Shown one piece after another: positions 7,201-38,277 of a stretch of 64,000 bases of DNA. The notes below the pieces were generated by a model that was not told the origin of the DNA, ran no database searches, and was given only the letters and a program-made list of their open reading frames with translations. The position numbers and the translations under genes were made by a program. The stretch is from Dimorphilus gyrociliatus (Eukaryota; Animalia; Annelida). The stretch covers positions 1 through 64,000 of the forward strand of contig CAJFCJ010000020.1 in assembly GCA_904063045.1 (NCBI GenBank). Direction: 5' to 3'. Every line of letters begins with the position of its first letter. The stretch's first letter is position 1.

Positions 7201-7662
7201 TGTGTGAGTGTTAACTTGATTGGAAGCGTCTAATAATAGTTGTAATGCTTTTTCCAGTTAGATGTCTGGAGATTGGGCAGTGAATAGTAAATCACCGACG
7301 TGTACTTCTGCCACTTTTTCTCCACATGCCACACGTCCACCAGATAATTATACAAATAATAAATTATTTTTCCGCCGTCCACACTTGGCCTTCCAGAGTT
7401 TCAAGCGCTGAAGAAACGTTGATTTATAATTCTTGTTATGAAGAAAGAAAGCAATTGTGGTTTGATTCTTCTGCAATATGATAATGCCGACGTAGAAGCT
7501 TTTTTCATACTACCCGGTAGCGTGGACCATTTCTGGAACATAAATAAAAATAAATTGTATAAATGTACTGAAAATCCCACTTAACCTCAAAAGGACAAGA
7601 GGTTCTTTTCCCTTATATGTGCTATTGTTTTAGAGTAGAAATTTTCTTCCGTAGAAGAAAAT

Positions 7663-7848
7663 GGGCCAAACTTGGAGGTACTGCTATACCAAGTCAACCC
7701 GTGAGAAAACTTAAGCAAGCTTAATGCTTTCTCTGAAGACAAAAATACTGTTAACCATATTAGATAACACAGTGTGTTATCAGTTAGCGGTTAAACTAAC
7801 TAGAACAGATACTACACTTTGATCTTAGCCAAAAGGCCGAGAAGCGAT
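7663..7848 (-). ncRNA. U2: U2 spliceosomal snRNA, full length
   Basis: Minus strand reads ATCGCTTCTCGGCCTTTTGGCTAAGATCAAAGTGTAGTATCTGTTCT (canonical U2 5' end with branch-site pairing GTAGTA). Then stem IIa GTTAG/CTAAC, stem IIb GATAACAC/GTGTTATC, Sm site ATTTTTG, stem III GAGAAAGC..GTTTTCTC and stem IV ending GGTATAGCAGTACCTCCAAGTTTGGCCCA. Confidence 0.97.
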
Positions 7849-20612: not shown

Positions 20613-23600
20613 TTAGCACTTATCTTCATTATCTGTATATCTTTTTCTTAGTGTATAAACTTTGTTAATTACCTGAAAAATTAACGTAATTAAAATAAGG
20701 CGATCCGTCTTAATCCATTTTACCTTTAGAAAGAAAAACTCTATAAATTCAATTATAGTAACCACTGAAGCTCCAAGTAAAAGACCCATAAATCCTCCAA
20801 TCTCTGAGATAAATGCCAAAAATTCAAACTTTTTCATTTGAGTAATTTTCTCATAACTCATTTCTTTATAAAAAATTTCAACTTTGACAAAGTTTCGCCT
20901 GTTAAATGAATAATTTAGTTATGTAAGAATAAGAATAAAATGAAGAAGAAGATGAGAAAATCCTTTAATACTAACAAAAAGAAATCTTCGTCAATATAAG
21001 TATTTTTCTCAAAGATTCTCAATTCTTTTTGAACATTAAAAAATATTGCTAATATCTGTGAAACTTGCTCCTTAAACTGAAAAGTTTTATTAAAAAGAAA
21101 GATTTCCATTGAGATGGTTAAATTTGTAAAACAATTGGCCATAATCATAAATGTATAATTATTGTCAATGCATAATTCAAAATAAGTTACGAACGGCTCG
21201 TCGGTTTTATTAAAAAACTTGAAAAATTGTAAATTATCAGGCAAAGGTTCAAAAAATTTATTCCATTCGCCAAGAATATTTTTCCCGAAAAAATTTGATA
21301 TATCGTGAAAGTAGCCTGTCGTTTCTATTCGAAAATTGTCAAGTAGTCCAAGGAAATTTCTCATTTCGTATAATTTGTCAAGGATATCGTCATTATTTAA
21401 AATGTCTATTATCTCTTTCTTAGTAGCCGATTCGCGTATATTTGTCTTTTTTATGAAATTACTAAATTTCGTATGGAAATGTCTTAATATCTTTAGATTA
21501 AATATCGTATTTTTCCAAAAGAAATCGTAAATTTCAAGTTTTTTTCCATAGTCGTAAACATATTCACGAACTGTAGGTAAACGTTCAAGGAATAGTATAG
21601 TATCGTTTTCTTCTTTCTTGTTTATTAGACAATACGTTTGAAAATCTTCTTCGAACTGCAACGAATTTATTACTTCAATAGTGGTTGTCATAACGTATAC
21701 GCCTTCAATAGCCATTGCCTTAGTAGTATTTGACTGAAGCCAGGAGATAATGTCATTTACTTGTCCCAGATGATACTCTAATATAGTTAGTCTCTTCATG
21801 CATTTTGTGATAATCTTTTCGCTATACGATCTATTTGGGAAATGTGTCATAATCACTTCTCTGAAGGTTGAATAAATATTTTGAATAAAGTTTAGAAAAT
21901 TCGAAATAAGACTGTTCCGATTAGACCATGAAGAGATTATGTCTTCTAGTCGTTCATGTAAGGTATCTATATCGAAATTGGTACAATTTAATATGTCTGT
22001 TATAGTGGTAAGATTCTGCTTCCAACACGTATTCAACCAGTAAATTGTAAGGGTCGACTGAGAAAATACGTATTGACCTCCAAAATTAGACAATTCAGAA
22101 AAGTAACTTGAAAAGTTATTTTGCATTAAACGAATTGATTCATTTTTATGAACTTTACTAAGCATTTCCGCATCTTTTGAGAGATTATTAAGATCATTTC
22201 TTATTGCTTCCATAATTTCTTCAAAGAAAGGAATAGAATCGTTGGAGCTGTTCGATGATTTAGTTAATAAGCTTAAAAAATTGGTAATTTCAATCATAAA
22301 ACTATCAAATGATGATAGGAAGGGGATAAAGTTTTTTAGATTGCGATTTCTCTTTGACTCTTCCAGTACCTCTGTGTATTCTAGAGATTTTTGAACGCTT
22401 TCTTTTAAATTTTCTAATAAAGATTCGTTTTGAAAGAGATCTTTTTCGACACTTATCTTTGATATCGCTGACGAAGAGATTGACGGTTGGTAGGAAACTT
22501 GAAAGCATGGCATGTGACAGTCACAATTAATCTTTTTGTACTTTAATTTATTAAGTTCGTTCTCAAAGCAGAGAAACTCTTCTCCCAGAGAACAGCTATT
22601 CACCATTTTTATGAATTCCCACATATAATAGAGATAAAGAGGTCTGCATTGACATTTTTTAACGACTATTTGAATTCTACAAAAATCAACACATTCAGCG
22701 TGAGATTTAAAATGCGAATTCTCACAATAACCGTAAGGCGGGCTTAAACTATGAATCTCTGTTCTCTTTACGCTGATAATTGTATGCATTCCGGTCGAAA
22801 CAACAAAACCCAGATCGGAAACTAGAGGTTTATCGTGATCATCGTGGAGCAGTATTTTCAGTCCGGCGCCGTTATCAGGACCGGGCATGTGTTCATACTG
22901 TTCAATATTCAACAGGAGGGATAGTGCGTTGGCCCTCCCCCATTCAGTTACTATTATAGACTTGTTCGTGTTAAAAGATTGACAGATACCGTAATCTGTA
23001 TAAACTGGGTGGAAATTCTGGAGACAGTTTGCACCAGCCCATGAGCAACGATAAATAAAATCATCTCCGTGATGAATAGCTTCGGTTTGTACGTTGAAAG
23101 CGTCAACAGAAGTATAATTCTGTGAAATTATCTTTAAAATTTCTGTTTTATTATGTAAATCCGAATCGTAAAGAATATTGAAGAAATTGAAAAATCCTAA
23201 ATCTGCAATTTTAGTTAACCTGAAAATGTTTGTAAACGCATTATTCTTCATTCATTAAAATCCCAAAAGGCCACAAAAAAATCATTAAGAAATGTTTACC
23301 GAAATTTATTCTGATTGCAGATTGTAACTGTTGGAAATTTTAGTTTATCCGTATAAATAACCTCAACATTCACTGATGCTTCTTTCTTGTTATAATCTAT
23401 ACTCCTTGATATAACTTGAAAGATGAAAAGTCCCGAAATGCTTAGCACAATTAAAATCCAAAATATACGTCTAACAATTGAATGATTTCTTTTAAAAATG
23501 TTATTTATTCCATGGAAAGTAGTTTCTTGGGTAAATTCAGTCCACGTTATTATTTTAGGTTGCGGAGAAGATGAATCAGGAATTGTATCTACATTGATAT

Positions 23601-23613
23601 TTGTCATTTTCAA
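20613..23613 (-). CDS. DEG/ENaC (ASIC-like) channel paralog 4, 930 aa; exons 23300-23613, 20976-23219, 20724-20898, 20613-20672; about 495-aa segment at the knuckle position
   Basis: ETTFHG pre-TM1 motif, TM1, FPTVTICNQN, CSWAG..C, GLKILLH, Cys-rich thumb, TM2 SEIGGFMGLLLGASVVTIIE. GT-AG introns, phases consistent (2793 nt). Confidence 0.93.
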
Positions 23614-23853
23614 ATTGAAAATGAGAGATATTGTTCAAAAATATCTGATTATCATCGATACCAAAATAATTCAAAAAAGGCTTTTATTTAATGAAACAAT
23701 AAGAAATTGTTTTTTATATAGTTTTTTTTTCATTATAATTGAAAGAAAATCGATAAACTGGTAAATATAAAGCTTAATAAGTAACGCAATAAACAGAAAC
23801 AATTAGAATAACTATGATTGAATAAGTATTTATACAAAAATATTCTATTTAGA

Positions 23854-26783
23854 TTATGCGCTAGGATTTCGTTTATCTTCTTTATTGAACGATTTTCTAA
23901 TGATCTATTTTAAAAATAAAACAGCAAAGGAAGATGTAATTTGTTTGAATTTGACTTTTATGTTTAACTTACAATTGTTATAAAGAATTCAATAAATTCA
24001 ATTAAAGTTACTACAGATCCTCCAAGTAGCATTCCCATAAGACCTCCGATCTCTGATAGAAAAGAGAGATATTCGAACGTTTTAATCTGTATAATCTTTT
24101 GATAGGATAATTCTTGATAGAATATATCAACTTTAGCAAAGTTACGCCTATTTTTAAAATGAAAAATAATTAAATTAGTAGAGAGGGAAGGTATTTAAAT
24201 AACTTACAAAAAGAAATCGTCGTCAACAATCAACACCTTTTCAAAAGATTTCAATTCACTATTAACATCTAAAAATGTAGATATAGACGGTGATATTTTC
24301 TCTTTTAGTAATAACGTAATATTAGTTGCCTTAATATTAATGATTATTGACCAACGTAGGAAACAAGCTCCATATTGAAGTGATGTGAGATTACTGCTTG
24401 AACAACTAGTTAAATCAGTTTCAATTTGTTGTCCATAGACTTTGAAAAATTTTAATAGTTGCATTGAAGACGGTAAAGGTTGAAAAAACTTATTCCATTT
24501 TGATTTGTAGTTTGAATTGTAAGTATCATATATTTCAAAAGCTATATCTTGAAATTCTCGAAGTAAATTATCAATAAAAGTTAATGTATTACGTAATTCG
24601 TAGATTTTACTAAAAATTCTATCCTTATTAAGTATATCTATTAAATCTTTTTTCTTAGGTTGTTCAGTTAAAGTAGTACGTTCCATAAATTTCTTTAGAC
24701 TCTCGTGGAATAATATCAACTTGTCTACATCTTCAAATATTATCTTTAAAGATTTATTATATGATGCAACTTTATGAAGGTATTTATTGAGCTTATCGTA
24801 GATAGTATAAAGATTTTTCCTATTATCAATCTCGATGTCTAAATGACAATATTCATTTTTCAAATAATTAACCTCTAAGGTATTTAACTTTTCAAAAAAG
24901 TAGATAAAATAAACGGCTCCTTTTGAACGATCATCAATTGAATTGGCTTCATGAAGTAAGTTCAAAGTTTTCTTAAAATCTTCGTATAAATCGTTAATTT
25001 CTTTTAAATCCTTTTGACATTTTTTAATAATATTTTCAAGTATTTCGTCATTAAATTCCTTGGTGGCAAATTTTTGTATTGTCTTAGGATAATCCCTATA
25101 AGATATACTTAACATGTTCAATTCTTGAATGATTTCATCTTTACTTTTATATACTTCAGTTAAATTGATTAGGAAAGCGTCCAATAGAGTTACATTATCC
25201 ATATTTATGCAATCTAGTATTAGATTAGTATTGTTAGGTGTTTTTTCGAGGCAGGGAAGTAGATTTTTTATATTATTTACTATAGTTTGATTCAGAATAA
25301 GAAAACTTATGTAAAAAGCTGGTACTTTATAAATTTTCGACATAAAGTCTTTATATAATACAGAATTTTTAACTTTTATTAGTAATTCCAAGTTTTTGAC
25401 AATGAGAGTAATATCATTCCTTATCGATTGTTCAAAATCGTTGAATATGTTTGAATTCTTTGAGCTATTAAGAAACTCGCTTAATTCGCTAAATCCGGAT
25501 AAAAAGTTTTGAAATTTTCTTAAAAAAGGGGTAAAAATTTTGTCATTTCTTCTCCTTCTCGTATCGTCTAAGAATTCAGCGTATTCTAAAGTTGTACTCA
25601 AATTTTCTTCCAGATTCTTCCTTAGAGATTCGTTATGTAAAAAACCGTGCCCAGCGCTAAATCTTGATATTGAAGAAGACGATAAGGATGGTTCATAGAC
25701 AATTGAGAAACAGGGAGAAAAACATTTGCAATTAATTGCTTTTAAACTAAAATTTTTCATCTCTCGTTCAATGCAATCGAATTCTTGCCAAAATGAACAA
25801 TTTTGAGAAATATTCGAGTATCTTACACCGTTCATTTCGGCAAGAAAAGGAGTACATTGGCATTTCCGAAAAACCATTTGCATTCGACACGAATCAATGC
25901 ATTCTAAATGAGATTTAAAACGAGAACTTTGACAGTTTCCATGAGGAGGATTTAATTGATGAAATTCCGTTTTCTTAATACTTACAAGCGTATTCATTCC
26001 CGGGGCTACTAAGAAACCTAAATCAGATACAAGGGATTTAAAATGGTTATTATGGAGCAAAATTTTAAATCCAGGGTTGTTGTGATATCCAAAGACATGT
26101 TCGTAATGTTCTACATTAAGCCAGAGGGATAGTGCAGTCGCCCTTCCAGATTCTGTTACTTTGAAAGATTTATTATGTATTGTATAACAGACGCCGTAGT
26201 CAGTTATTGTTGTGGAAAATTGCTGAGTGCAGTCTATTTCACCCAGCCAACAACTATGTACAAAATCTTTGGCTTGATGAATCGCTCTATATTTTAATTT
26301 TTGAACATCCAAAGATGAATAATTTGCTGCTAAATTTTTTAAATATTTCGTCTTATTTTGCAGTTCAGTATTATAAAGCGTTTGAAAAAATGTGTAATAA
26401 CCAAATTCAGCGATTTTCGATAACCTTTAAGCAAAAACAACAAGTAACATGATATCTGCTTAGAACATTAAATAAACAAACCGAAATCTATTCTGGTTAC
26501 AGATTGTTACTGTAGGAAATTCCAGTTCATCTGCGTATATTACTTCGACATTAACGGCTGCTTCCTTTTTTCTAAAGTGGATACGTCTTAACGTAACTTG
26601 AAGAATAAAAAGTGTGAGTGCACAAAGTACAATCAAAATCCAAAAGATTTGCCTTGAATACGAAATATTCGTTTCAAAGATATTCTTTATTCCGTGAAAA
26701 GTTGTTCTATGAGTGAATTTTTCCCACTTTTTCTTAATTGATGACGTTTTCTTCAACGGGAAATTATTAATTTTATCATTCAT
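23854..26783 (-). CDS. DEG/ENaC channel paralog 3, 914 aa; exons 26482-26783, 24208-26424, 23973-24147, 23854-23904; about 486-aa knuckle segment; GGS filter
   Basis: RTTFHG, FPTVTICNQNRFR, CWLGEIDC, thumb cysteines, TM2 SEIGGLMGMLLGGSVVTLIE. Phases consistent (2745 nt). Confidence 0.93.
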
Positions 26784-28310
26784 ATTAAAGATTTTGAAGA
26801 GGTATTACTATATCATTTTCCTCTCACCCAAGCTATTTTTATAATAGTTGAAACATTCTATGGTGAATATTTTAATCAATAGAAACTTTTTTCATTATTG
26901 TATTCAATAAATTTGAATATATATACAGTATATATAAATTTATATATATATATATATACAGTATAAAGAGAATATATTAGTCACTGTAATCAATAACGTG
27001 GTATGTTTTTTTAACTATTAAAATCTATTGTAATTGAACAATTAACAATGAAAAAGAAGTTATTTTTATGATTATTTATTAAGATAAGTATTAGTTGAAC
27101 AAAGGCAAAGTGTTCAAAATAATTTGAATATTAATTTTTATTAATGAAAACCTTTACAATATACAATTGCAAAATGTTTTGATTAACAAAAGTGAGTGAA
27201 CTTGTTTTTGGTCTGAAATATTAATTCTATCAAATATTATTCATTCAAGCATTTTCGAAAGAAATGTAACTGAAATAAATGTGAGTTATTGTTGGTATGA
27301 TGTAAAAGTAATTTTTTTAAAGTTTATCCATTCTTAATTGTTATTTATTACAACTCTTTTGATGTACAGAATAGAGACGTTTTATGCATTCTTTATCTAT
27401 GACCCTAAAGTTATAAGACAATAGACTGTAAGTCCAATCGGCAAAACTTTATTATTATTTATTATTAAATACTGCACTTTACTACACAATACGAAATATG
27501 TAAATTAATTCAGCACCTTAAGGAGCAGCTATGAATTGTTTATGTTTGAATTATTGAAATGAAAGTGATAAATATCAATGCTTTATTATACATGAGTTAA
27601 TATTGTATACAGTATGTATTAAATGCAGAAATTTATTTGATATCTTAACAGTTTATTGCCATGATTGAATAGCTTTCCTATAAGATAAACATAACAATTA
27701 AAATGTCTCATTTTATTAGGGTTTCTTATGGATTTAGACACAAATTTCTCATGAAAAAATAAACTAGTATAATTGCTATACTCTATTGAATATATCATCA
27801 GTGAGTGTTCCCGTCGTAATGATTTTTAATTATTTAAATACGTATATTAACGATTTGTAGTGTTTTTCGTTGGCTTTTTATATCATTATATTAAAATTCC
27901 TCGGCAAAACTCTTTGTTTTGTTAACCGCTTCATTAAGTAATTCCATTATTAAAACATGAAAAAGTAAAGAGAGAAAGAGTGAGAGAGAATGACCGCTTA
28001 GGAAAAAGAAAAAGATTTAAAATATTAAAGTATTAGTTTTTGTGTTTGTTTGATACTATTTCCATGAAATAGTTAAATAAAATATTCTTGCTAACAAGAC
28101 TATAGATGTAACGTACATTAATAACTATAAAAATAGACTCCAGGTTATTCAGTATATTTTAAAAAGAAATAATGAGGATAACTTCATATGGTATTTCTTC
28201 AAAAACTGTTGTGTATAACAATGTTTATTAGTACAATTTCGAATGATAACTATCAGTGAAGCTGCGAATGATATAGATTCCTTCAAAGGCTTATACCTGT
28301 TCCATTTTTT

Positions 28311-31288
28311 TCAAGCATTCACACGATTCATATTGGAGAAAGAGTTAAATATCTACAAACAAATGTAAAATTATTATACAGAAGAATAGTTGATACTTTA
28401 ACACGTACTCTTAAAGCAAAATACTCTAAAAATTCGACAAGAGTTATAACCGACGCTCCGAGCAACAATCCCATAAAGCCACCAATTTCCGAGATAAAAG
28501 ATAAAAATTCAAACTTTTTGTGTTGAGTTATTCTCTGAAAGGCCATTTCTTTATAAAAGATATCAACTTGTAAAAAGTTCCTTCTGTTCAATAATGATGA
28601 TGAAATCTTGTCTTCGAAAAAACTCGTATATACTTACAAAAAGAAGTCTTCATCAACGTTTGATATCTTTTCAAATGATATCAATTGTTCTTCAACTTTA
28701 TAAAATTTAGAATTTATGCCACTTATCTTACCTTTTAAGGATATTGTCACATTTATAACAAGATCATTTAAAAGGCTCCCAATTTCATTGAAACATAATG
28801 ATAATTGTCTTAGTGTCAAAATCGAATCAGCATTACATTTAAGGGTTTTAAAATGAGAATTTTTAAAGAAAAGTATAAACTTGTAAAATTTCATATTAAC
28901 TGGTAGAGGCTCTACAAAGTTCTTCCATGATGGAGAAACTAAAACTTTAAATTGGGACAAAATATCAATAAAAAAATTTTTAAATTCAGTTTGGTAATCT
29001 TGAATAAGATTCAAAGTGTTTTTCACAGAGTTTATTTTATCTGGTATCTCCTCATTAATCATAATTGAACTAAGTTCTTTCTTTGTAATAGGTTCACTTA
29101 TTCGTCGTTTTAATAGAAAGGCTTTCATTTTTAAATTGAATTTCTTTATTTGTGATAAACTTTTCAGTATGCTACTCCAAGAATTCTTGTAAATTTGTAC
29201 CCTTCTCTTAAAGACATTTATGCGATTATATATTGAATGTATAGACTTTAAATAGTTTTCTAGATGATTTTTTGAAATGTAAAGTAAATTTAATAGGCAT
29301 TTGTCGTACAAGCCGACAGTTTTCAGTGTTTTCTTTACTTTTCTTACAAAAGATATGAAGCCCAATATTCCTTTGATATGAGTATCAGTCGTTTCATTAG
29401 ACTTTAACAAATTCAATGAACTTTCTAATATGTTGGAATAATGCAATAATCCATTTAGTTCAGTCCAGCATCCTCCCAGATATGATTTTAAAATATCTTG
29501 ATTAAAAGAGTCATCAAACATCATCGACAGTGAATCGTTGTAGGAGGAAATCTTATCTACTAATAGATAGGATGTTTGTAATATATTGTCTCTCCTTCCG
29601 TAAGTATATTTAACACCATATCTCAAGGAGAAAAGCAGCTGCTTCTTACTTAACTTCATACAGCTTAAAATATCCTCAGTAGCATTATAGGGTTCGTACA
29701 TGCAGCTACCTAAAATGGATGATATACTTTTATGGTATATTTTGATAAAGAATTGATTCTCAATGTAGACTACTTCCTTAAGTATTTTAGAAAAATTTGA
29801 CTGTAGATAATTAAACTCTTGAGATAGAAAAGCTCTAAAGAAAATTTCAGTTTGAATTTCTACATGCGTTAGGTCATGTTCGAATGTTTCAACATATTGC
29901 GTAAAGATTGCATCTGCCGAAGTAGAATTTTCTCTTTCGAAAAGATATATTAATGTTTCGAAATTGTAAAGAAACGTTGCAAATTCATCTAAAAATGGAT
30001 TAAAATATTGAATATTTTTCTCTCTTCTTGTTTCGTCTAACGTTTCTGCATTTTCAAGAGCTGTTCTCAATTCTTCGCCAATTGTTTCCCTTATTTTCTG
30101 ATGATTTAACAGTATTCTATGAGCGCTGAACTTGGACATTTTTGAGGAGGATAAGGATGGTTCGTAGGTGACTTGGAAACACGGTACGAAACAATCACAT
30201 TTTAGCTCCTTATAAGTCAATCTCATAATTTCGTCTTCGAAACAAAGAAAATGTTTACCAAATGAACAAGTTGATAGATTCGTTATAAATTCAGTATTTT
30301 GTGTACTGTATTTATGGTAAATAGCCATGGAAGATAAGCAATTGCATTTCTTCGTAGCGGCAACAACTTTACAATAGTCTACGCATTCCGCGTGAGAAGT
30401 GTATGTGGAATCTGTACAATGACCGTATGGAGAGCTTAAACTAAAAGACTCTTTTCTTTTTACACTCATCATTGTATACATTCCAGGTGCCAGGGCATAC
30501 CCTAAATCGGAAACAAGAGGTTTAGCATGATTATTGTGTAGATATATTTTCACTCCTGCTTCGTTATCAAGTCCAGGTATATATTCGTATTCTTCAATAT
30601 TCAAGATTAGGGATAAGGCATTCGCTCTTCCTGAATTTTTAATTGTAATGGATCTATTATTGAATGTGTAGCATATTCCTAAATCCGTTTTTGATTTAAA
30701 GAAGTCATTGAAGCAATCCTTTCCAGCCCATTTACAGGAATAAATAAGATTCCTTTGGTCGTGTCCTGCTCTATAATTGAGGAACCTCAATTCATGGAAT
30801 GATAGATTTCTTGTTAAATGTTCCATTATTTCGGTATTGTTTCGTTCAACAGAATCGTAGAAGTTTTTAATGAAAGAAAATAAACCAAGTTTAGCTATTT
30901 GCGTTAATCTGCGCAAAATATGATAATTTAAATATTAATTTATATTAGAAGAATATGCAACACACCTAAATCTATTCTGATTACAAATTGTCACCGATGG
31001 AAACTCCATTTGTTCTGAATGTAAGATTTCAAAATTTATTGATGATTCTTTACGACTGAAGGCAATTCCTCTAACGATAACTTGAAAGAAGAACAATCCA
31101 CATACAGTTAGAATCATTAGCGTCCAAAAGAGTCTTCTCTTGAGTGAATATTTTGATTGAAAAATGTTTTTTATTCCATGAAAAGTTGTGTCATTGGTGA
31201 ATTCTGACCATGGCTTGTTATTTATCCCTTGATGACCTATTTTTGAAGATACCAAATTTGCGTTGCTACTGGACTTTTTGTCAAACAT
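28311..31288 (-). CDS. DEG/ENaC channel paralog 2, 936 aa; exons 30966-31288, 28638-30908, 28409-28583, 28311-28352; about 499-aa knuckle segment
   Basis: DTTFHG, FPSVTICNQNRFR, CKWAGKDC, GVKIYLH, TM2 SEIGGFMGLLLGASVITLVE. Phases consistent (2811 nt). Confidence 0.93.
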
Positions 31289-32189
31289 ACCTAGAGAGTT
31301 AAACTAGCAGCAAAGCCTACACCGTAGAATGACAATAATATTTCTATATCTTAAAATATGCATTTGGAAGTTTTGGTTCATGGATTCTACAAATTCTGCC
31401 CTTTGTATATTTCACAGTTAACAGCAACTTTAAAGTTTTTGCTATAAGCTGCTAATAACAATCTGTGTATTTACAATAAATAATAAGTCTATCTCTCTCC
31501 GTATAGGTCTCATTCTCTGACATCTTCTTCACAGTAGAGTAACTAACGCCATCTATCGGGAAATGAAATAGAATTCTGTTGTAGAAAGAAAACTTTTAAA
31601 AGTCATAGTCAAGGTTATTATAAAAGAGAAAAAGGACAATAAATGTAATATGATCCAGATGAAGAGAAAACTAAAAATTGGACAATTCAGTAAGAAAACA
31701 GTGAAAGAATACTTTTTTTTATCTATTTTCTCCACGGAAAATATCTTAAATAATTCGAAATCCAATTTAATAATAGTTAATAATATTTAAATGATTTCTT
31801 AGGGTTATTCATAGCTTTTATAAAGTTTTATTAGTAATAAAAGCTTTCTTAAGAATGGTGATAATTAATTTTTATCTAATCTTGTTCTAGTTTATAGTAA
31901 TTTCGATTGTCAATTCATTCTCATTAGGGATAGAAGAGAGCTATTGATGATGAATAACTAAATTGCTTATGGCGTACTATTTTGAAAGGAGTGTTTTATT
32001 AAGGTGACGTTTTGTTAGTCTTGTTCATTTGTTTACTTTTTTTGTTATATGCATTTTATGTCGCATCCTGTTTTAGTTGAGTCAGCCATGTATAAATGTT
32101 TTAATGCTCTCTCTTTATGTTCATTTTTGAAGTAGATTCTTTACAATTTTCTAAATACAGTAATAAAAGTTCTGATAAATCTTTAAACT

Positions 32190-32720
32190 AACTATACTCA
32201 CAGACTTAAAAACTGCACTTTAACCGTAAAGTTCGCTTTAAATTCTATGATTCAATACTTTTTACATCAATCAAAGTATGCATTCCAGATGCAATAGCAA
32301 GACCTGAATCCAACATTAAACGTCTTGTGTAATCATTGTATAAAAACATCTTGACTCCAGCATCATTATCAGGACCAGGCATGTACGTATATTATTACAG
32401 ATTTAAAACCAAGCATAAAACGTTATTCATATCCATTCCTCATTGTTACTCAACAATATCATATTGTCATTAAGAATATGGTTGACTGTCCTGAAGTTAA
32501 ATTCTTTGTCTTAGCTTGTACAATTAAAGAACAATAGCGAAATTTCTTCATAAAATGTAATGAATCGAATATTCCCAGTATAATATACGTTGTTTATACA
32601 TTCTACAATCCATACTAACTGTTTAATGTTTTGTTTACCAGCGCAAAAGTAAGAACACCCTCAAGCTTCATTTGTATAGAATTACAATATCGCCGTGATT
32701 CTAAAGGAAAACAACGGAAG
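32190..32720 (-). pseudogene. Pseudogenised DEG/ENaC fragment, closest to paralog 1
   Basis: Minus strand gives LCLVLNL**YTYMPGPDNDAGVKMFLYNDYTRRLMLDSGLAIASGMHTLIDVKSIES*, versus paralog 1 LSIVLNIEQYEYMNGPDNDAGVKIFLHNDYTRPLMTDLGFAVASGTHTLVGVRRIESY. In-frame stops, no downstream exons found. Boundaries approximate. Confidence 0.85.
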
Positions 32721-34995
32721 TAAACTTTACTACTTTAGGGAATCAATCGTATTTATTTACGGTAATTTCTTTTAATTTGTTAATATCTTCGAGACATTCG
32801 GTCGTTCTTACTTAGTGTTTCTACATAATTTATCAACAAAAACTTTCTTACTGTCCTTTAAAATGATCTACTTCCGGTGCATTTGAACTGTCTTATTAAT
32901 AAGGAATAAGATTTTATCGATTCACTTATTTTACACATAGAAAAGACGAATAGAAAAAGTAAACTTTAAATTGTTTTAGTTACATATTTCTGTTACTAGA
33001 AAATAAAAATTGTTATGCCGACAGCGACGTCTACTTTCTTCCCAGCTAGTTAGTCACTTTATTGTTACTTAAAAAAATAAATTTAAAGTAGACGTCACTC
33101 TATTTCTTTTTTCTTTATAGGTTAAAGCTTTTTAGCCAAAATGGAAAGTTGATTAAATGCAATCTTCCAGTAGACAGCCTTAAAGTTACTATCTAGCTTT
33201 CAGAATGCCAAAATAGTGTTGCAGGCCTAGCAGAGAGGAATGCCTGTATAAATATACCCCCATGATCGGAATAAATAGTACATTGTGCATTTCTTCAGCT
33301 TTTGCATATGTAATACAAGTACAGTATATTTAAGGTATTAAATGCATGTAGAAGTAATTCAAAAATTAATTTACCCTAATTTCTACCTCTTTCCCCCTTT
33401 AAAGAGTTTTATTAATTACCTTCATTGAGTGATAATCCCATAATTCTCTTTTTTCACATCAACCGGTATTTTGTATTCCCGTCATAGCTTTCTGAGTCAT
33501 CACGAACTTTTATTTATTTCTTATAATTTGTAATAGTAATATTGAATTATTGAATAATCAAACGTTTTAAAAATTACATAATTAATGTTATAAACGCTGC
33601 ATATAGAACAGACTTGCTAGTTTCCTTTTTGCTTTTATTTGATTATCATATAAATTTATTTCTTCTCTTCAATTGAAGATTTTTTATTTTCCGCTTTTAA
33701 TGAAATTCGTTAATTAATTTATTTAAGGAGAAAACTTGAACAGCCATTTTAAACAGAGAGCTATCCAAGTAAACATGTTTACAAAAATATTCTAAATATA
33801 GAACTCTTTTACTTGAAATATTTACACGTAATATATATTTTATATAAATGTTAGCTATAAATTAAGGCATCATTTAGAGATAACCTAAAATACAACGTTG
33901 TTATAAATTGATTAATTGTTTTTAAAACATGTTTTGCTATCAATCTATCATCTTTCAAGTAAGCACTAGATTAGTTAGTGAAAATTGACTGTGATTTCAT
34001 TAATCAAGTGTGTATTCAATAGATTCTAAATTTGATACAATTATAACAAAATATATAGATTTATACAAAAAAGTATAAGGTTAACATATAATAGAGTTTT
34101 GTGAGCAACAAAATTAGAAGATAACACTTCAAATACTAAAACTAAAGAATAGACTTTACATAATCTGTTTACTTGTCTTTGTTTTACCTTAAACAATGAC
34201 AAATACTTTATAGCTTTTAAAATACAAATATTATTATATTAGTATATTTAACTGCTTTCATACCATATATAAAGGTGTTTTATTCTTTAAAATTAGTTAA
34301 ACTTTTTAGACTTGCCACAGAGTTTGATCCTTCGCTATGAAACAACTTCATTATTGCCTATAGGTGAGAGAAAATTAACATTAGAAGTATACAGATATAA
34401 TGTATATAGTATATGTAGCTATTGTCTGTTTCACGAGAGAGTGTTTCGTAAAAGAGACATCTTATAAAGGGTCTTTTTTATTGGATTGACTAATTCACAT
34501 CGGATCATCTAATAAGAAATATTCTCTAGGACACATTGATTTATATGAACTGCTTTTGTTGGAAATCTAATCCATAACTGTTGAGAATATAAATAATATT
34601 CTCTTGTTTTTTAGCATTTCCTTGCAAACCACACATGTTGAATAAATAAAGATGGAGCTATTTAATTTCTTACACTACTCGAAAACGCCAAAATTTTCGT
34701 GCAGCTTGAACGTGATAACCACAACTAAAAACGGTTTAAATGCTGACTATTATGGACGGCATATTTTAAAGAAAAACTATTTCATCTGAAACATCTAATT
34801 TCACCTGATAAATAATTAATCGTTTCTGAATGAAGATAAGAGCATATCGGTTATTGCTAATTTTCAAAAAGAGTACTCATAAATTGTCCTTTCCTATAAA
34901 GTAGTTTTCTATGAAATGATATGAAAAACAGTCAATCCTGTAAATCCCTTACTATTTTTCAAGATGGTCCAGACGTATGTTTAAGTATTACTAAC

Positions 34996-37900
34996 CCTAA
35001 CAACAAAGTATTCAAGCAATTCTATAATAGTAAGGACTGAAGCTCCTAGCAACAAGCCCATAAATCCACCAATTTCAGAAATTAAAGATAGGAATTCGAA
35101 TTTTTCCAGTTGTTGAATCTTTTGATAACTTAGTTCTTTATAATAGATGTCGACTTTAGCAAAATTTCGGCTGTTTTAAAGAATAATAATAATTATTTAT
35201 TAAATGGAAGACTGACTTTTTTAAATGAGAATGTTCAAAACTTACAAAAAGAAATCTCCATCAACTTTCAATAATTTTCTGTAAGCATAAATTTCATCTT
35301 TTAAATTTTCTGCACTTTTATCCATATTATAGCCATATTTTGAAACTTCACGAAGGGCATTTTGCCATTCTTTCTGATATATAGTTGAAATAACATCAAC
35401 GCACCCTTCGTAATTGTTTAAAGTCCATGTTATATTGATACAATTCAATTTATTCAATTTATCATTCTCATATTGAAGAGTATAGTTTGGAAATAATAAG
35501 GATAGAGGAGACGTTTTATTACCTTCGCGATTCACGATAGGAAAAGGCCAAGTTACTAACTCGTTAAGTTTACGTTCAATATGTCTTAGAGATGAAACTG
35601 TTGTTTTAAAAGAGGCTTCAAAGTTCGTTGATAAAGTTGATACATATTGGTCAGCTAAGGCAATTTCATTCAAATCTCTATCCATTGTTGTTGATGATAG
35701 TTTCTCATATATCGATTCTTTAGTTAAATTGGCAGAATAATTATCTAATTTCAAATATTCCGTCATCATCGTATTCAATTCATTTATTCTCTCAACTTTT
35801 TTTTTCGTATTATTGATATATTTTTCAACCTCGCGATTATAAACTTTATATTCTCCATATGCTTTCTCAAAACCAATTATCATACCTTTCATGCCAAGCT
35901 TTTCCTCCCAAAAGTCATCATCGGCGAAGAAAAAGCATAAATCCTCCAAAGGTTCTACAAACTGGGGTATTTTTTTCAGACCTTCATACAAGTTTACTAC
36001 TTCTTCTTTTTTCTGTGCCAAACTGACGTTTGCCCCAAGAACACTTATTGAGCTGGCTACTTTATTCCTTACAACTGTAATACGATTTAAAACTGGTAGA
36101 CATTTCTTATTAATGCCTCTCATCGAATCATCCGTTAAATTTTTGCCAAATATCTTCATAATCTCTTCTTTAAAAGGAACTTCAATATCCAATATTCCAC
36201 TAAGAGATTTTAGAAAATCGTCGCCTATGAATAAATCCCAATATTTCTTTCGAGGAGAACCCGGACCTTGTGGGCCTTTTGGTCCTAATTTATTAAAATT
36301 ACTTTTAATATCATCGCAGTTCCACAAAGCGTTCGAATTGTTTCCATTCCTAATAAAACATGTTTCAATATCTTTTAGAGCTTGCAGACTTTTGTCATCT
36401 TTAGATACATAAAAGACATCAGGGATATTCTTTTCTAAATCTTTTTCAACTGGCTCAAGATCGTCTTCGAGGCTACTCATTTTGTTTGTAGAGGAGAAGC
36501 GGTAGGCTTTTTGAATATTCATCATCGTTATACTTAAATCTTCTTTAACTATTTCCCATAACTCCATCATATTTGGAATAACGGCCGCTTTATAATTACT
36601 AGTGTCAGTTAATAAAGTATTAAGCGTGTCTATAGCTGCTAAAAATTGATCTGTTGCAGTTGAAAATGAACTCATAAACAAACGATTATTTGCTCTTTTT
36701 TCCTCTACAAATATTTCTCCCGTTTCTAATGCTTCCTTTAAAGACTTTTTAAGTTTCTGCAAAGTGTCCGTATCGCCAAGAGTAACTTTATCAGCACTTA
36801 GCTGGGAAATCTTTGAATAAGAGAGAGAAGGCTCATAAACAATTTGGGCACAAGGGACCAGACAAGAGCACAGATTCTTATTCTTTTTCACTTTTGCCAA
36901 TTCTCTTGTCACACATATTAAATTTTCTTTTATTTTACAAATTCCTGTGGTATTGCTTACAGTTAAAATTGACGAAGCCTCATAGGGTATACACTTACAC
37001 CTTTCACTTACAACTCTCATTCTACAATGATCAACACATTCTGCATGAGATTTGAAATTAGAATGTATACAATTTCCGTAAGGTGCGTCTAAACTGTAAG
37101 ATTCAATTCTTCTTACACCCACGAGAGTATGGGTACCAGATGCTACAGCAAAACCCAAATCCGTCATTAGAGGTCTGGTGTAATCATTGTGTAAAAAGAT
37201 TTTTACTCCAGCATCATTATCCGGACCATTCATATACTCGTATTGTTCAATATTTAAAACTATCGACAGAGCATTAGCCGTTCCTGATTCGCTTACTGTT
37301 AGTAGCTCACTCTGATTTTTGGACCTTATAGAATTAAAGGTATAACAAATTCCATATTCAGTTATAGTTTCGATAATTTGGTCGCTAGTACAATTTCGCC
37401 CGGCCCATTCACATGAATAAATCAGATCAGATTTTTGATGGCCAGCTGTTTTAAAAATTGTTTTGGTATCAATGGAGAATCCTCTCGGAATCATTAACGA
37501 CGATTTCTTGCGATTTTGCAAAGTATAAAAATTTTGTATAAATTTATAGAGGCCCATATGTGAAGTTTTTGTTATCCTGAAGGTAAAAAAATGAGAAAAT
37601 TAATAAGTTAATTATTACTAATGTTCAATCGCGTAAATTGCTCTAAGTATTTTTTTTTCTATACGGTTTTTTGTTTATTCTCAACATCCCTTCATACATT
37701 ATTAACGAGATAATAAAGAATGCTTTTTTCTATGCCGACTAAGTACATATTTATCCGTAAGGGTCGGCATTTTTTTTTTGAATATGTAATAGTATGTAAT
37801 ATTACAAAACAGTCATAAAAAGTTATAGACCCTTTTTGAAAGAAAATCTACTTTTAATGATCTTAGTTAAAAGGTAATAATTAGTGATTATAGAATAATG

Positions 37901-38277
37901 AAATTTCTATGGAAAATAAGGCAAATGGATAATAAAATGTAAAAGAACAACGGAAGCTATACATACTTGAATTTGTTTTGGTTACATACTGTAACAGTTG
38001 GATAGTTGAGTTTCCCTGCATAGATAACTTCAACATCGACGGTTGTTTCTTTCGCATTGAAATCAATTGATCTGCTTATGACTTGATACAGAAAGAAAGC
38101 CAAAGCCGTTAGAACGAAACATGCCCAAATTATGCGTCGAATTATTGAATGATCTCTATCGAATATATTACTGACGCCGTGAAAAGTTGTAGAATCCATA
38201 TATTCCCTCCAAGTTTTACCTCTAATTATTCTGGGGGTTGGCCAAGCATGAGAAGGTTTCACTTTTGTCGTAATCAT
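34996..38277 (-). CDS. DEG/ENaC channel paralog 1, at least 939 aa; exons 37967-38277, 35246-37576, 34996-35170, last small exon unresolved; about 520-aa knuckle segment
   Basis: STTFHG, YPTVTVCNQNKFK, CEWAGRNC, GVKIFLH, TM2 SEIGGFMGLLLGASVLTIIE. Same intron positions as the other three paralogs (third exon 175 nt in all four). Confidence 0.92.

Follow-up and report, generated by a model that had tools for sequence, protein, structure and literature searches.

The stretch of DNA that we investigated, called the window below, comprises 64,000 nucleotides (nt) of the genome of the miniature annelid Dimorphilus gyrociliatus (assembly GCA_904063045.1, contig CAJFCJ010000020.1, positions 1 to 64,000). 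It contains four intact, tandemly duplicated genes for subunits of DEG/ENaC channels, which we denote g1 to g4, and in each of them the knuckle, the element of the ectodomain between strands beta10 and beta11, is replaced by a segment of about 500 residues. All four genes are located on the minus strand in an AT-rich region (27-33% GC), where four long open reading frames (ORFs) of 702-778 residues are flanked by shorter ones. The short ORFs 5' of each long ORF encode the N-terminus, the HG motif, the first transmembrane segment (TM1) and beta1, and those on the 3' side encode beta11, beta12 and the second transmembrane segment (TM2).

Joined through GT-AG introns, these ORFs give gene models of similar size. 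The g1 model (20613..23607; exons 23607-23300, 23219-20976, 20898-20724 and 20672-20613) encodes 928 residues, ends in one clean stop and matches the Pfam ASC family with an E-value of 2.6e-39. The g2 model (23854..26783; exons 26783-26482, 26424-24208, 24147-23973 and 23904-23854), supported by its splice sites, ASC match and hydropathy profile, encodes 914 residues, and the g3 model (28311..31288; exons 31288-30966, 30908-28638, 28583-28409 and 28352-28311) encodes 936. For g4 (34894..38277; exons 38277-37967, 37576-35246 and 35170-34996) the model reaches 943 residues with a last short exon, 34908-34894, that is uncertain. Each gene has three introns, and these measure 51-87 nt with the sole exception of the first intron of g4 (37577-37966), which is 390 nt long.

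Outside the knuckle the four proteins are ordinary members of the family, as a preceding reading of the sequence without database searches (the sequence-only reading) had stated. The translations of all four second exons match Pfam ASC (PF00858) with E-values of 1e-33 to 1e-42 and 117-147 bits against a cutoff of 23.6, the profile matches ending at about position 391/455. A search of the Protein Data Bank (PDB) chains with phmmer places g4 closest to the acid-sensing ion channels (ASICs) among solved structures, with E-values of 2.4e-42 for ASIC1, 7e-42 for ASIC2 and 2.6e-41 for ASIC5 (BASIC), and the matches to FaNaC (1e-26) and to the gamma subunit of ENaC (3e-23) are weaker. The HG motif, present as FHG before TM1 in all four models, is shared with the ASICs, as are the two transmembrane segments, the thumb cysteines and the GAS selectivity filter in TM2. 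Hydropathy reveals only two hydrophobic segments per model, TM1 at about residues 43-70 and TM2 at about 875-935, and 13 cysteines of the ectodomain core are invariant among 12 family members. The filter reads GAS in g1, g3 and g4 and GGS in g2 (exon 3, 23973-24147), a difference that the sequence-only reading had not reported; judged by this motif, the ion selectivity of g2 may differ from that of the other three subunits. Immediately ahead of the GGS, g2 also shows a Leu-Met variation.

The insert between beta10 and beta11

The canonical knuckle consists of two short helices, alpha6 and alpha7, and spans about 20-30 residues. In g1-g4 the distance between the beta10 motif PS[LI]S.S..S and the beta11 motif RNF..V.I[FY]Y, which we used to delimit the insert, is 486-520 residues: 495 in g1 (494 in-frame residues at 20978..22459), 486 in g2 (485 at 24210..25664), 499 in g3 (498 at 28640..30133) and 520 in g4 (519 at 35248..36804), all on the minus strand and each wholly inside exon 2. 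The gene models thus reproduce exactly the four lengths, and the confinement to a single exon, that had been read from the ORFs.

The placement at the knuckle is borne out by alignment to structures and relatives. In the phmmer alignment to human ASIC1, g4 residues 25-365 fall on ASIC1 residues 29-395 and g4 residues 877-936 on ASIC1 residues 407-466, which leaves about 511 residues of g4 opposite 11 residues in the middle of the ASIC1 knuckle. The insert begins where helix alpha6 starts in this alignment, and the D-x-D-F-F motif that immediately precedes beta11 falls on the end of alpha7. Aligned jointly, ASIC1, ASIC4, a coral sequence and further short relatives show a beta10/beta11 spacing of 19-28 residues; the vertebrate ASICs have 19, in contrast to the 486-520 residues found here.

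Six cysteines are found in each of the four inserts at aligned positions, and none of the four models contains a hydrophobic (transmembrane) segment inside the insert. The number of N-x-S/T glycosylation sequons ranges from 6 to 15 per insert, with 15 in g1. The sequence-only reading had described the sequons as many; they are indeed enriched, but only modestly (101 in 12 inserts, where 71 would be expected), and two of their positions are conserved. A short collagen-like Gly-Pro-x run occupies residues ~164-191 of the g4 insert (window ~36220-36290, minus strand), in the loop predicted with the lowest confidence, and it is longer in P0007, the orthologue from a second species described below. 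The insert of a Capitella relative (P0023) carries a furin-like R-K-K-R site in an extra loop. From their sequences, either of these elements could be a processing site or a flexible linker.

Several observations show indirectly that the insert is translated as part of the subunit. At 28% GC, about 8% of random codons are expected from base composition to be stops; the probability that some 495 random codons stay open is then ~1e-19, and because the run is open in all four copies, openness by chance is excluded. Pairwise identity among the four inserts is as low as 20-29% (13-29% between paralogues overall). A second species, here species X, has orthologous genes in a tandem array that shares the exon plan; it is represented by Logan contigs of runs SRR23372228 and SRR23372229, of which L001 carries four of the genes and L003 two. 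One paralogue of that array, P0008 (831 residues, L001 9523-12018), has lost intron 1, so that its N-terminus and TM1 run straight into exon 2.

Between the two species, core and insert are 66% and 38% identical for g1 and X_762, 62% and 33% for g3 and X_745, and 80% and 42% for g4 and X_755. The proportion of nonsynonymous differences (pN) in these three inserts is 0.40-0.43, compared with a proportion of synonymous differences (pS) of 0.70-0.78; synonymous sites are saturated (pS 0.70-0.80). We compare pN with pS since the synonymous rate (dS) is saturated for g1 and g3 and the ratio of nonsynonymous to synonymous rates (dN/dS) is usable for g4 alone; there, dN is 0.57 in the insert and 0.13 in the core, and dN/dS is ~0.29 and ~0.07, respectively. 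Because of these values we conclude that the insert evolves under purifying selection but three to four times faster than the core, with constraint weaker to the same degree. In 13 dinophilid inserts five of the cysteines are invariant and the sixth is nearly so. They probably form three disulfides, a pairing suggested by their spacing only.

Two other origins of a long segment were considered and rejected. A nested or transposon ORF is ruled out by the absence of a Pfam match, the frame shared with the channel and the conservation across phyla, and the fusion of two genes is ruled out by the presence of both flanks of the insert in the same exon.

Relatives and age of the insert

A search with a family profile recovers four further long paralogues in Dimorphilus (DgyrCDS14629, 14545, 14464 and 14813), which brings the number of long copies in this genome to at least eight. 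It also recovers two Capitella proteins (1050 and 931 residues), two Owenia proteins (999 and 1009 residues), a RefSeq protein of 943 residues from the chiton Liolophura named "acid-sensing ion channel 4-B-like", and three proteins of 879-885 residues from a eukaryote assembly in ENA. The proteins from Capitella, Owenia, Liolophura and the ENA eukaryote, together with the further Dimorphilus paralogues, have inserts of 475-545 residues at the same beta10/beta11 site, and in the ENA eukaryote a single uninterrupted ORF runs from beta1 through the insert to beta11-12, TM2 and the C-terminus.

A maximum likelihood tree was calculated from the core with the insert removed. All 22 long proteins group in one clade (support 97/96), which also includes the Dimorphilus protein DgyrCDS14975. 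The long-knuckle clade is sister to vertebrate ASIC1/4 and the coral sequence (82/62) and is placed outside the sampled ASIC clade. It splits into two subclades, each of which contains a Capitella protein, and the chiton protein is found within one of them. The tree needs two changes of insert state, the second of which is in DgyrCDS14975. Because of this core tree, and within the limits of its thin outgroups, we conclude that the insertion is older than the split between annelids and molluscs.

The inserts themselves are more difficult to trace across phyla. Comparing the profile of the dinophilid inserts with that of the others, hhalign gives a probability of 80% and an E-value of 1.4e-5 for the first ~120 columns only. 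A profile search with the four inserts returned dinophilid proteins only and reached neither Capitella nor the molluscs; its two bacterial matches, a CHAT/TPR protein and an unnamed repeat protein, are spurious. Queried with only the g1 insert, a protein search indexed by words gave no match; its 8000 candidates were evidently swamped by low-complexity words, since the profile searches did recover relatives. At the level of predicted structure, a Foldseek search of the AlphaFold Database with the g4 insert model finds two Capitella proteins, R7VA86 at residues 426-967 (a segment that we had delimited as 424-968) and R7T5W4, and the oyster protein K1PHY3, annotated "Amiloride-sensitive cation channel 4-B", at residues 134-601. 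The probabilities of these matches are 0.99-1.00, with low TM-scores of 0.31-0.33. The match to the predicted oyster structure suggests that a long insert is present in the oyster as well, and the shared site, length and helical nature add support to a possible homology of the inserts across phyla.

The sequence-only reading had presented the insert as a system found at this locus. In that form the view finds no support: the insert marks a clade with members in other annelids and in molluscs, and its sequences are already in public databases. In the literature that we searched on the DEG/ENaC knuckle, on insertions in these channels, on annelid and mollusc channels and under the accessions of the relatives, we found no description of an enlarged knuckle. 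The Dimorphilus genome paper calls the ENaC repertoire canonical, and a survey of spiralian ASICs gives ectodomains of ~300 residues. The DEG/ENaC family is known, but the domain of ~500 residues and the clade defined by it appear to be undescribed, with the sequences deposited under generic names.

Predicted fold and possible role

AlphaFold2 models of the isolated insert as a monomer are all-helical for g1 (4 sequences; predicted local distance difference test, pLDDT, 71.5; predicted TM-score, pTM, 0.57) and for g4 (22 sequences; pLDDT 75.7, pTM 0.63), with helices of up to 50-60 residues in both, in agreement with the helical character proposed from the sequence. In the g4 model pLDDT exceeds 90 in the first long helices, the central helix pair and the last helix. 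The impression that the insert is no known domain also held up. A Foldseek search of the PDB with the insert models gave no match at E<0.001, Pfam has no match in any of 22 inserts, and searches of the ESM Atlas by shape and by features returned noise only. VIA-align likewise finds generic four-helix bundles only, with Z-scores of at most 12.8, within the noise of ~13 that the tool states for helical proteins.

The architecture of the domain was read from these fold alignments. One four-helix bundle of 199 residues is placed on positions 36-490 of the model (197 residues aligned at Z 12.8), so that it spans the first and the last long helix, and other four-helix bundles are placed on residues ~100-285. 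These alignments fit two stacked four-helix bundles, a long membrane-proximal one built from the first and last long helices and a distal one. With the first and last helices in the same proximal bundle, both ends of the domain would be returned to beta10 and beta11. The sequence-only reading had put forward a trimeric stalk or crown that might bind ligands, tether the channel or control assembly. The monomer models suggest that the insert of each subunit folds on itself into four-helix bundles and needs no coiled coil between subunits.

Prominin, TTYH and the sensor domains of bacterial chemoreceptors likewise consist of helices only and form elongated antiparallel bundles on the outside of a membrane protein. 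They recur among the weak fold matches, but at noise level (for prominin, Foldseek E-values of at least 5.9e-3 and TM-scores of at most 0.13; for TTYH, VIA-align Z-scores of 9.8-9.9; for McpZ, Z 10.1). In contrast to the shared outline, TM-scores are 0.10-0.26 and there is neither sequence similarity nor a Pfam match, and the resemblance is one of architecture only.

Precedents for lineage-specific extracellular additions are found within the DEG/ENaC family. The C. elegans degenerins, such as MEC-4, carry extra extracellular regulatory and neurotoxin-like regions, and FaNaC has an enlarged finger. These channels illustrate that the family tolerates additional extracellular modules that tune gating; however, the additions are much smaller and are located in the finger and in the region after TM1. 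None of the MEC-4-type and FaNaC additions is known to be a helical knuckle domain of 500 residues.

In the ENaCs, the knuckle itself has been proposed as a point of attachment between channel and matrix. N-glycans of the palm and knuckle of alpha-ENaC are reported to mediate activation by shear force via the extracellular matrix (PMC6955349), and N-glycans of the ENaC knuckle and palm are reported to act as matrix tethers in shear activation (PMC7958617). The inserts of g1-g4 bear sequons as well, but the ENaC arrangement is a short knuckle with a glycan tether, whereas g1-g4 have a protein domain of ~500 residues. By analogy with the ENaC glycans, a glycosylated tower on the knuckle would be a plausible built-in matrix tether. 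As to the ASICs, the positions that we take to be those of proton sensing in ASIC1a, His73 in the wrist and Lys211 in the palm in the numbering of the literature, align with positions of g4 that hold neither His nor Lys. Because these residues are not conserved, gating by protons in the manner of ASIC1a is not predicted.

We hold with moderate confidence that the insert defines an annelid-mollusc clade of DEG/ENaC channels in which the two-helix knuckle was expanded into an autonomous helical domain of ~500 residues, and that this domain could form a tower acting on gating as a lever or antenna. Three helical towers would rise from the top of the trimer. Each would hang on beta10 and beta11, strands of the palm that lead down to the beta11-beta12 linker and TM2. 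In ASICs, rearrangement of this linker and of TM2 accompanies gating and desensitisation, and beta10 and beta11 run to it. A rigid tower whose first and last helices anchor it to these strands could then pass movement on to the gate, whether from a pull through a matrix partner or from a rearrangement induced by a ligand, and in this way an external partner (matrix, a glycan-binding protein or a soluble ligand) or force may be coupled to gating. A stronger version of this proposal is conceivable, and we put it forward only tentatively: the tower would be a new extracellular gating module, present in a clade at least as old as the annelid-mollusc ancestor. In that clade the channel would be opened via beta10 and beta11 by a partner binding at its top, either through a built-in tether to the matrix, as a self-contained mechanosensor, or through a receptor site for a new class of ligands.

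Several observations weigh against the proposal of a lever-like tower. The bundle topology comes from alignments whose Z-scores lie inside the noise of helical bundles and from isolated monomers, and the role as lever or tether is pure inference. Profile similarity outside the dinophilids covers just the first quarter of the insert, and the dinophilid cysteines are not conserved outside this group. The outgroup sampling of the core tree is thin, with BASIC, HyNaC and FaNaC sequences absent from it, and DgyrCDS14975, a member of the long clade by its core, has in its gene model just 177 residues at the site. Two public gene models, DgyrCDS12265 and DgyrCDS12266, drop parts of the insert, and the kind of sequencing run that hints at transcription (X1, see below) is a guess.

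Among the alternatives, the one that survives best is that the insert is a passive structural add-on that plays no part in gating, a crown that serves trimer assembly, folding, trafficking or shielding and stabilises or selects combinations of subunits. We think this unlikely. In its favour, a genome with many paralogues, at least eight of them long in Dimorphilus, offers many combinations to select from; the inserts diverge fast, with the 13-29% identity between paralogues that is expected for assembly specificity; and the knuckle of ENaC is in contact with the finger of the adjacent subunit. However, each insert modelled as a monomer folds on itself at a fair pTM, which makes packing between subunits unnecessary, and some 500 residues retained since at least the annelid-mollusc ancestor are a high cost for assembly alone.

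It is improbable, in our judgement, that the insert instead binds a specific soluble ligand (a neuropeptide, a chemical cue or a metal, for example), which would make these proteins a new pharmacological class of ligand-gated channels and not tethered or mechanical ones. FaNaC, WaNaC and HyNaC, relatives in the superfamily, are gated by peptides (PMC9234716 and PMC11474038), long helical sensor bundles from bacterial chemoreceptors (the ligand-sensing domain of McpZ and other methyl-accepting chemotaxis proteins) are among the weak fold matches, and the fast evolution of the insert is consistent with changing ligands. However, the known peptide sites of FaNaC and HyNaC are in the finger, thumb and palm and not in the knuckle, and the chemoreceptor matches have TM-scores of 0.11-0.26, within noise.

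These channels bear on a long-standing question, namely the means by which extracellular tethers transmit force to the pore. The stimuli that gate DEG/ENaC channels are as different as protons, peptides, bile acids, proteases and force. The long-knuckle clade has roughly doubled the ectodomain by a folded domain that sits on the knuckle, atop two palm strands that lead toward the gating linker. Annelids and molluscs have both retained this element, and Dimorphilus, whose genome is among the smallest known for annelids, has multiplied it to eight copies or more. It constitutes a natural experiment on whether gating can be driven from the top of the trimer. The clade also represents uncharacterised channels in molluscs, a group from which ASICs are reported missing (PMC9949801).

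Public gene models and splicing

The public annotation represents the four genes unevenly, and two of the four are mis-modelled; the models given here correct them. DgyrCDS12268 equals our g4 model apart from the final few residues. DgyrCDS12266 (573 residues) is a truncated g3 that begins inside TM1 and lacks 306 codons of the insert, which are annotated as an in-frame intron of 918 nt (~28728-29645) bounded by GTAAGA and AG. DgyrCDS12265 (1359 residues) is chimeric and combines residues 1-898 of g2 with three g1 blocks, so that TM2 of g2 is fused to the middle of the g1 ectodomain and two blocks of the g1 insert are skipped; g1 is present in the public annotation solely as part of this chimera.

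One could read these models to mean that a large part of the insert is an exitron, a retained intron in frame with the gene and usually spliced out, so that the mature knuckle is much shorter. The 918-nt piece dropped from g3, the two g1 blocks left out of DgyrCDS12265 and the 177 residues at the beta10/beta11 site of DgyrCDS14975 would agree with this, but we give the idea very little credence, given that both models are poor, the one a fusion of g2 and g1 and the other starting inside TM1; that the inserts of g1 and g2 contain no strong donor (GTAAG, GTGAG or GTATG) and the species X orthologue, which is coding through this stretch, lacks the donor GT of the annotated g3 intron; that the skipped pieces have open frames, a pN well under pS and conserved cysteines; and that the real introns at the locus are short. 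The insert is also retained in other public models, namely DgyrCDS12268, 14629, 14464 and 14813 and those of Capitella, Owenia and the chiton (RefSeq). The public models from which pieces of the insert were removed look like annotation artefacts.

One sequencing run points in the same direction. This 2017 run, here X1, contains 78% of the sampled sequence words of g3 exon 2, and 59% would be the maximum if the 918-nt piece were missing. X1 is not among the runs that hold the neighbouring intergenic DNA, whereas one DNA run holds that DNA fully. This suggests that X1 is transcript-derived and provides a weak sign of transcription.

A tblastn search of the window with the four models also detects the relic of a fifth DEG/ENaC copy between g4 and g3 (32248..32391, minus strand). 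It comprises 48 codons from the region of the palm and beta-ball, with 71% identity to g4, and the same search detects no other exons of this copy nearby. Elsewhere in the window, a complete gene for the U2 spliceosomal RNA is located at 7656-7848 on the minus strand (Rfam RF00004, 159 bits), and the first 4 kb have a GC content of 49-56%, much above that of the remainder of the window.

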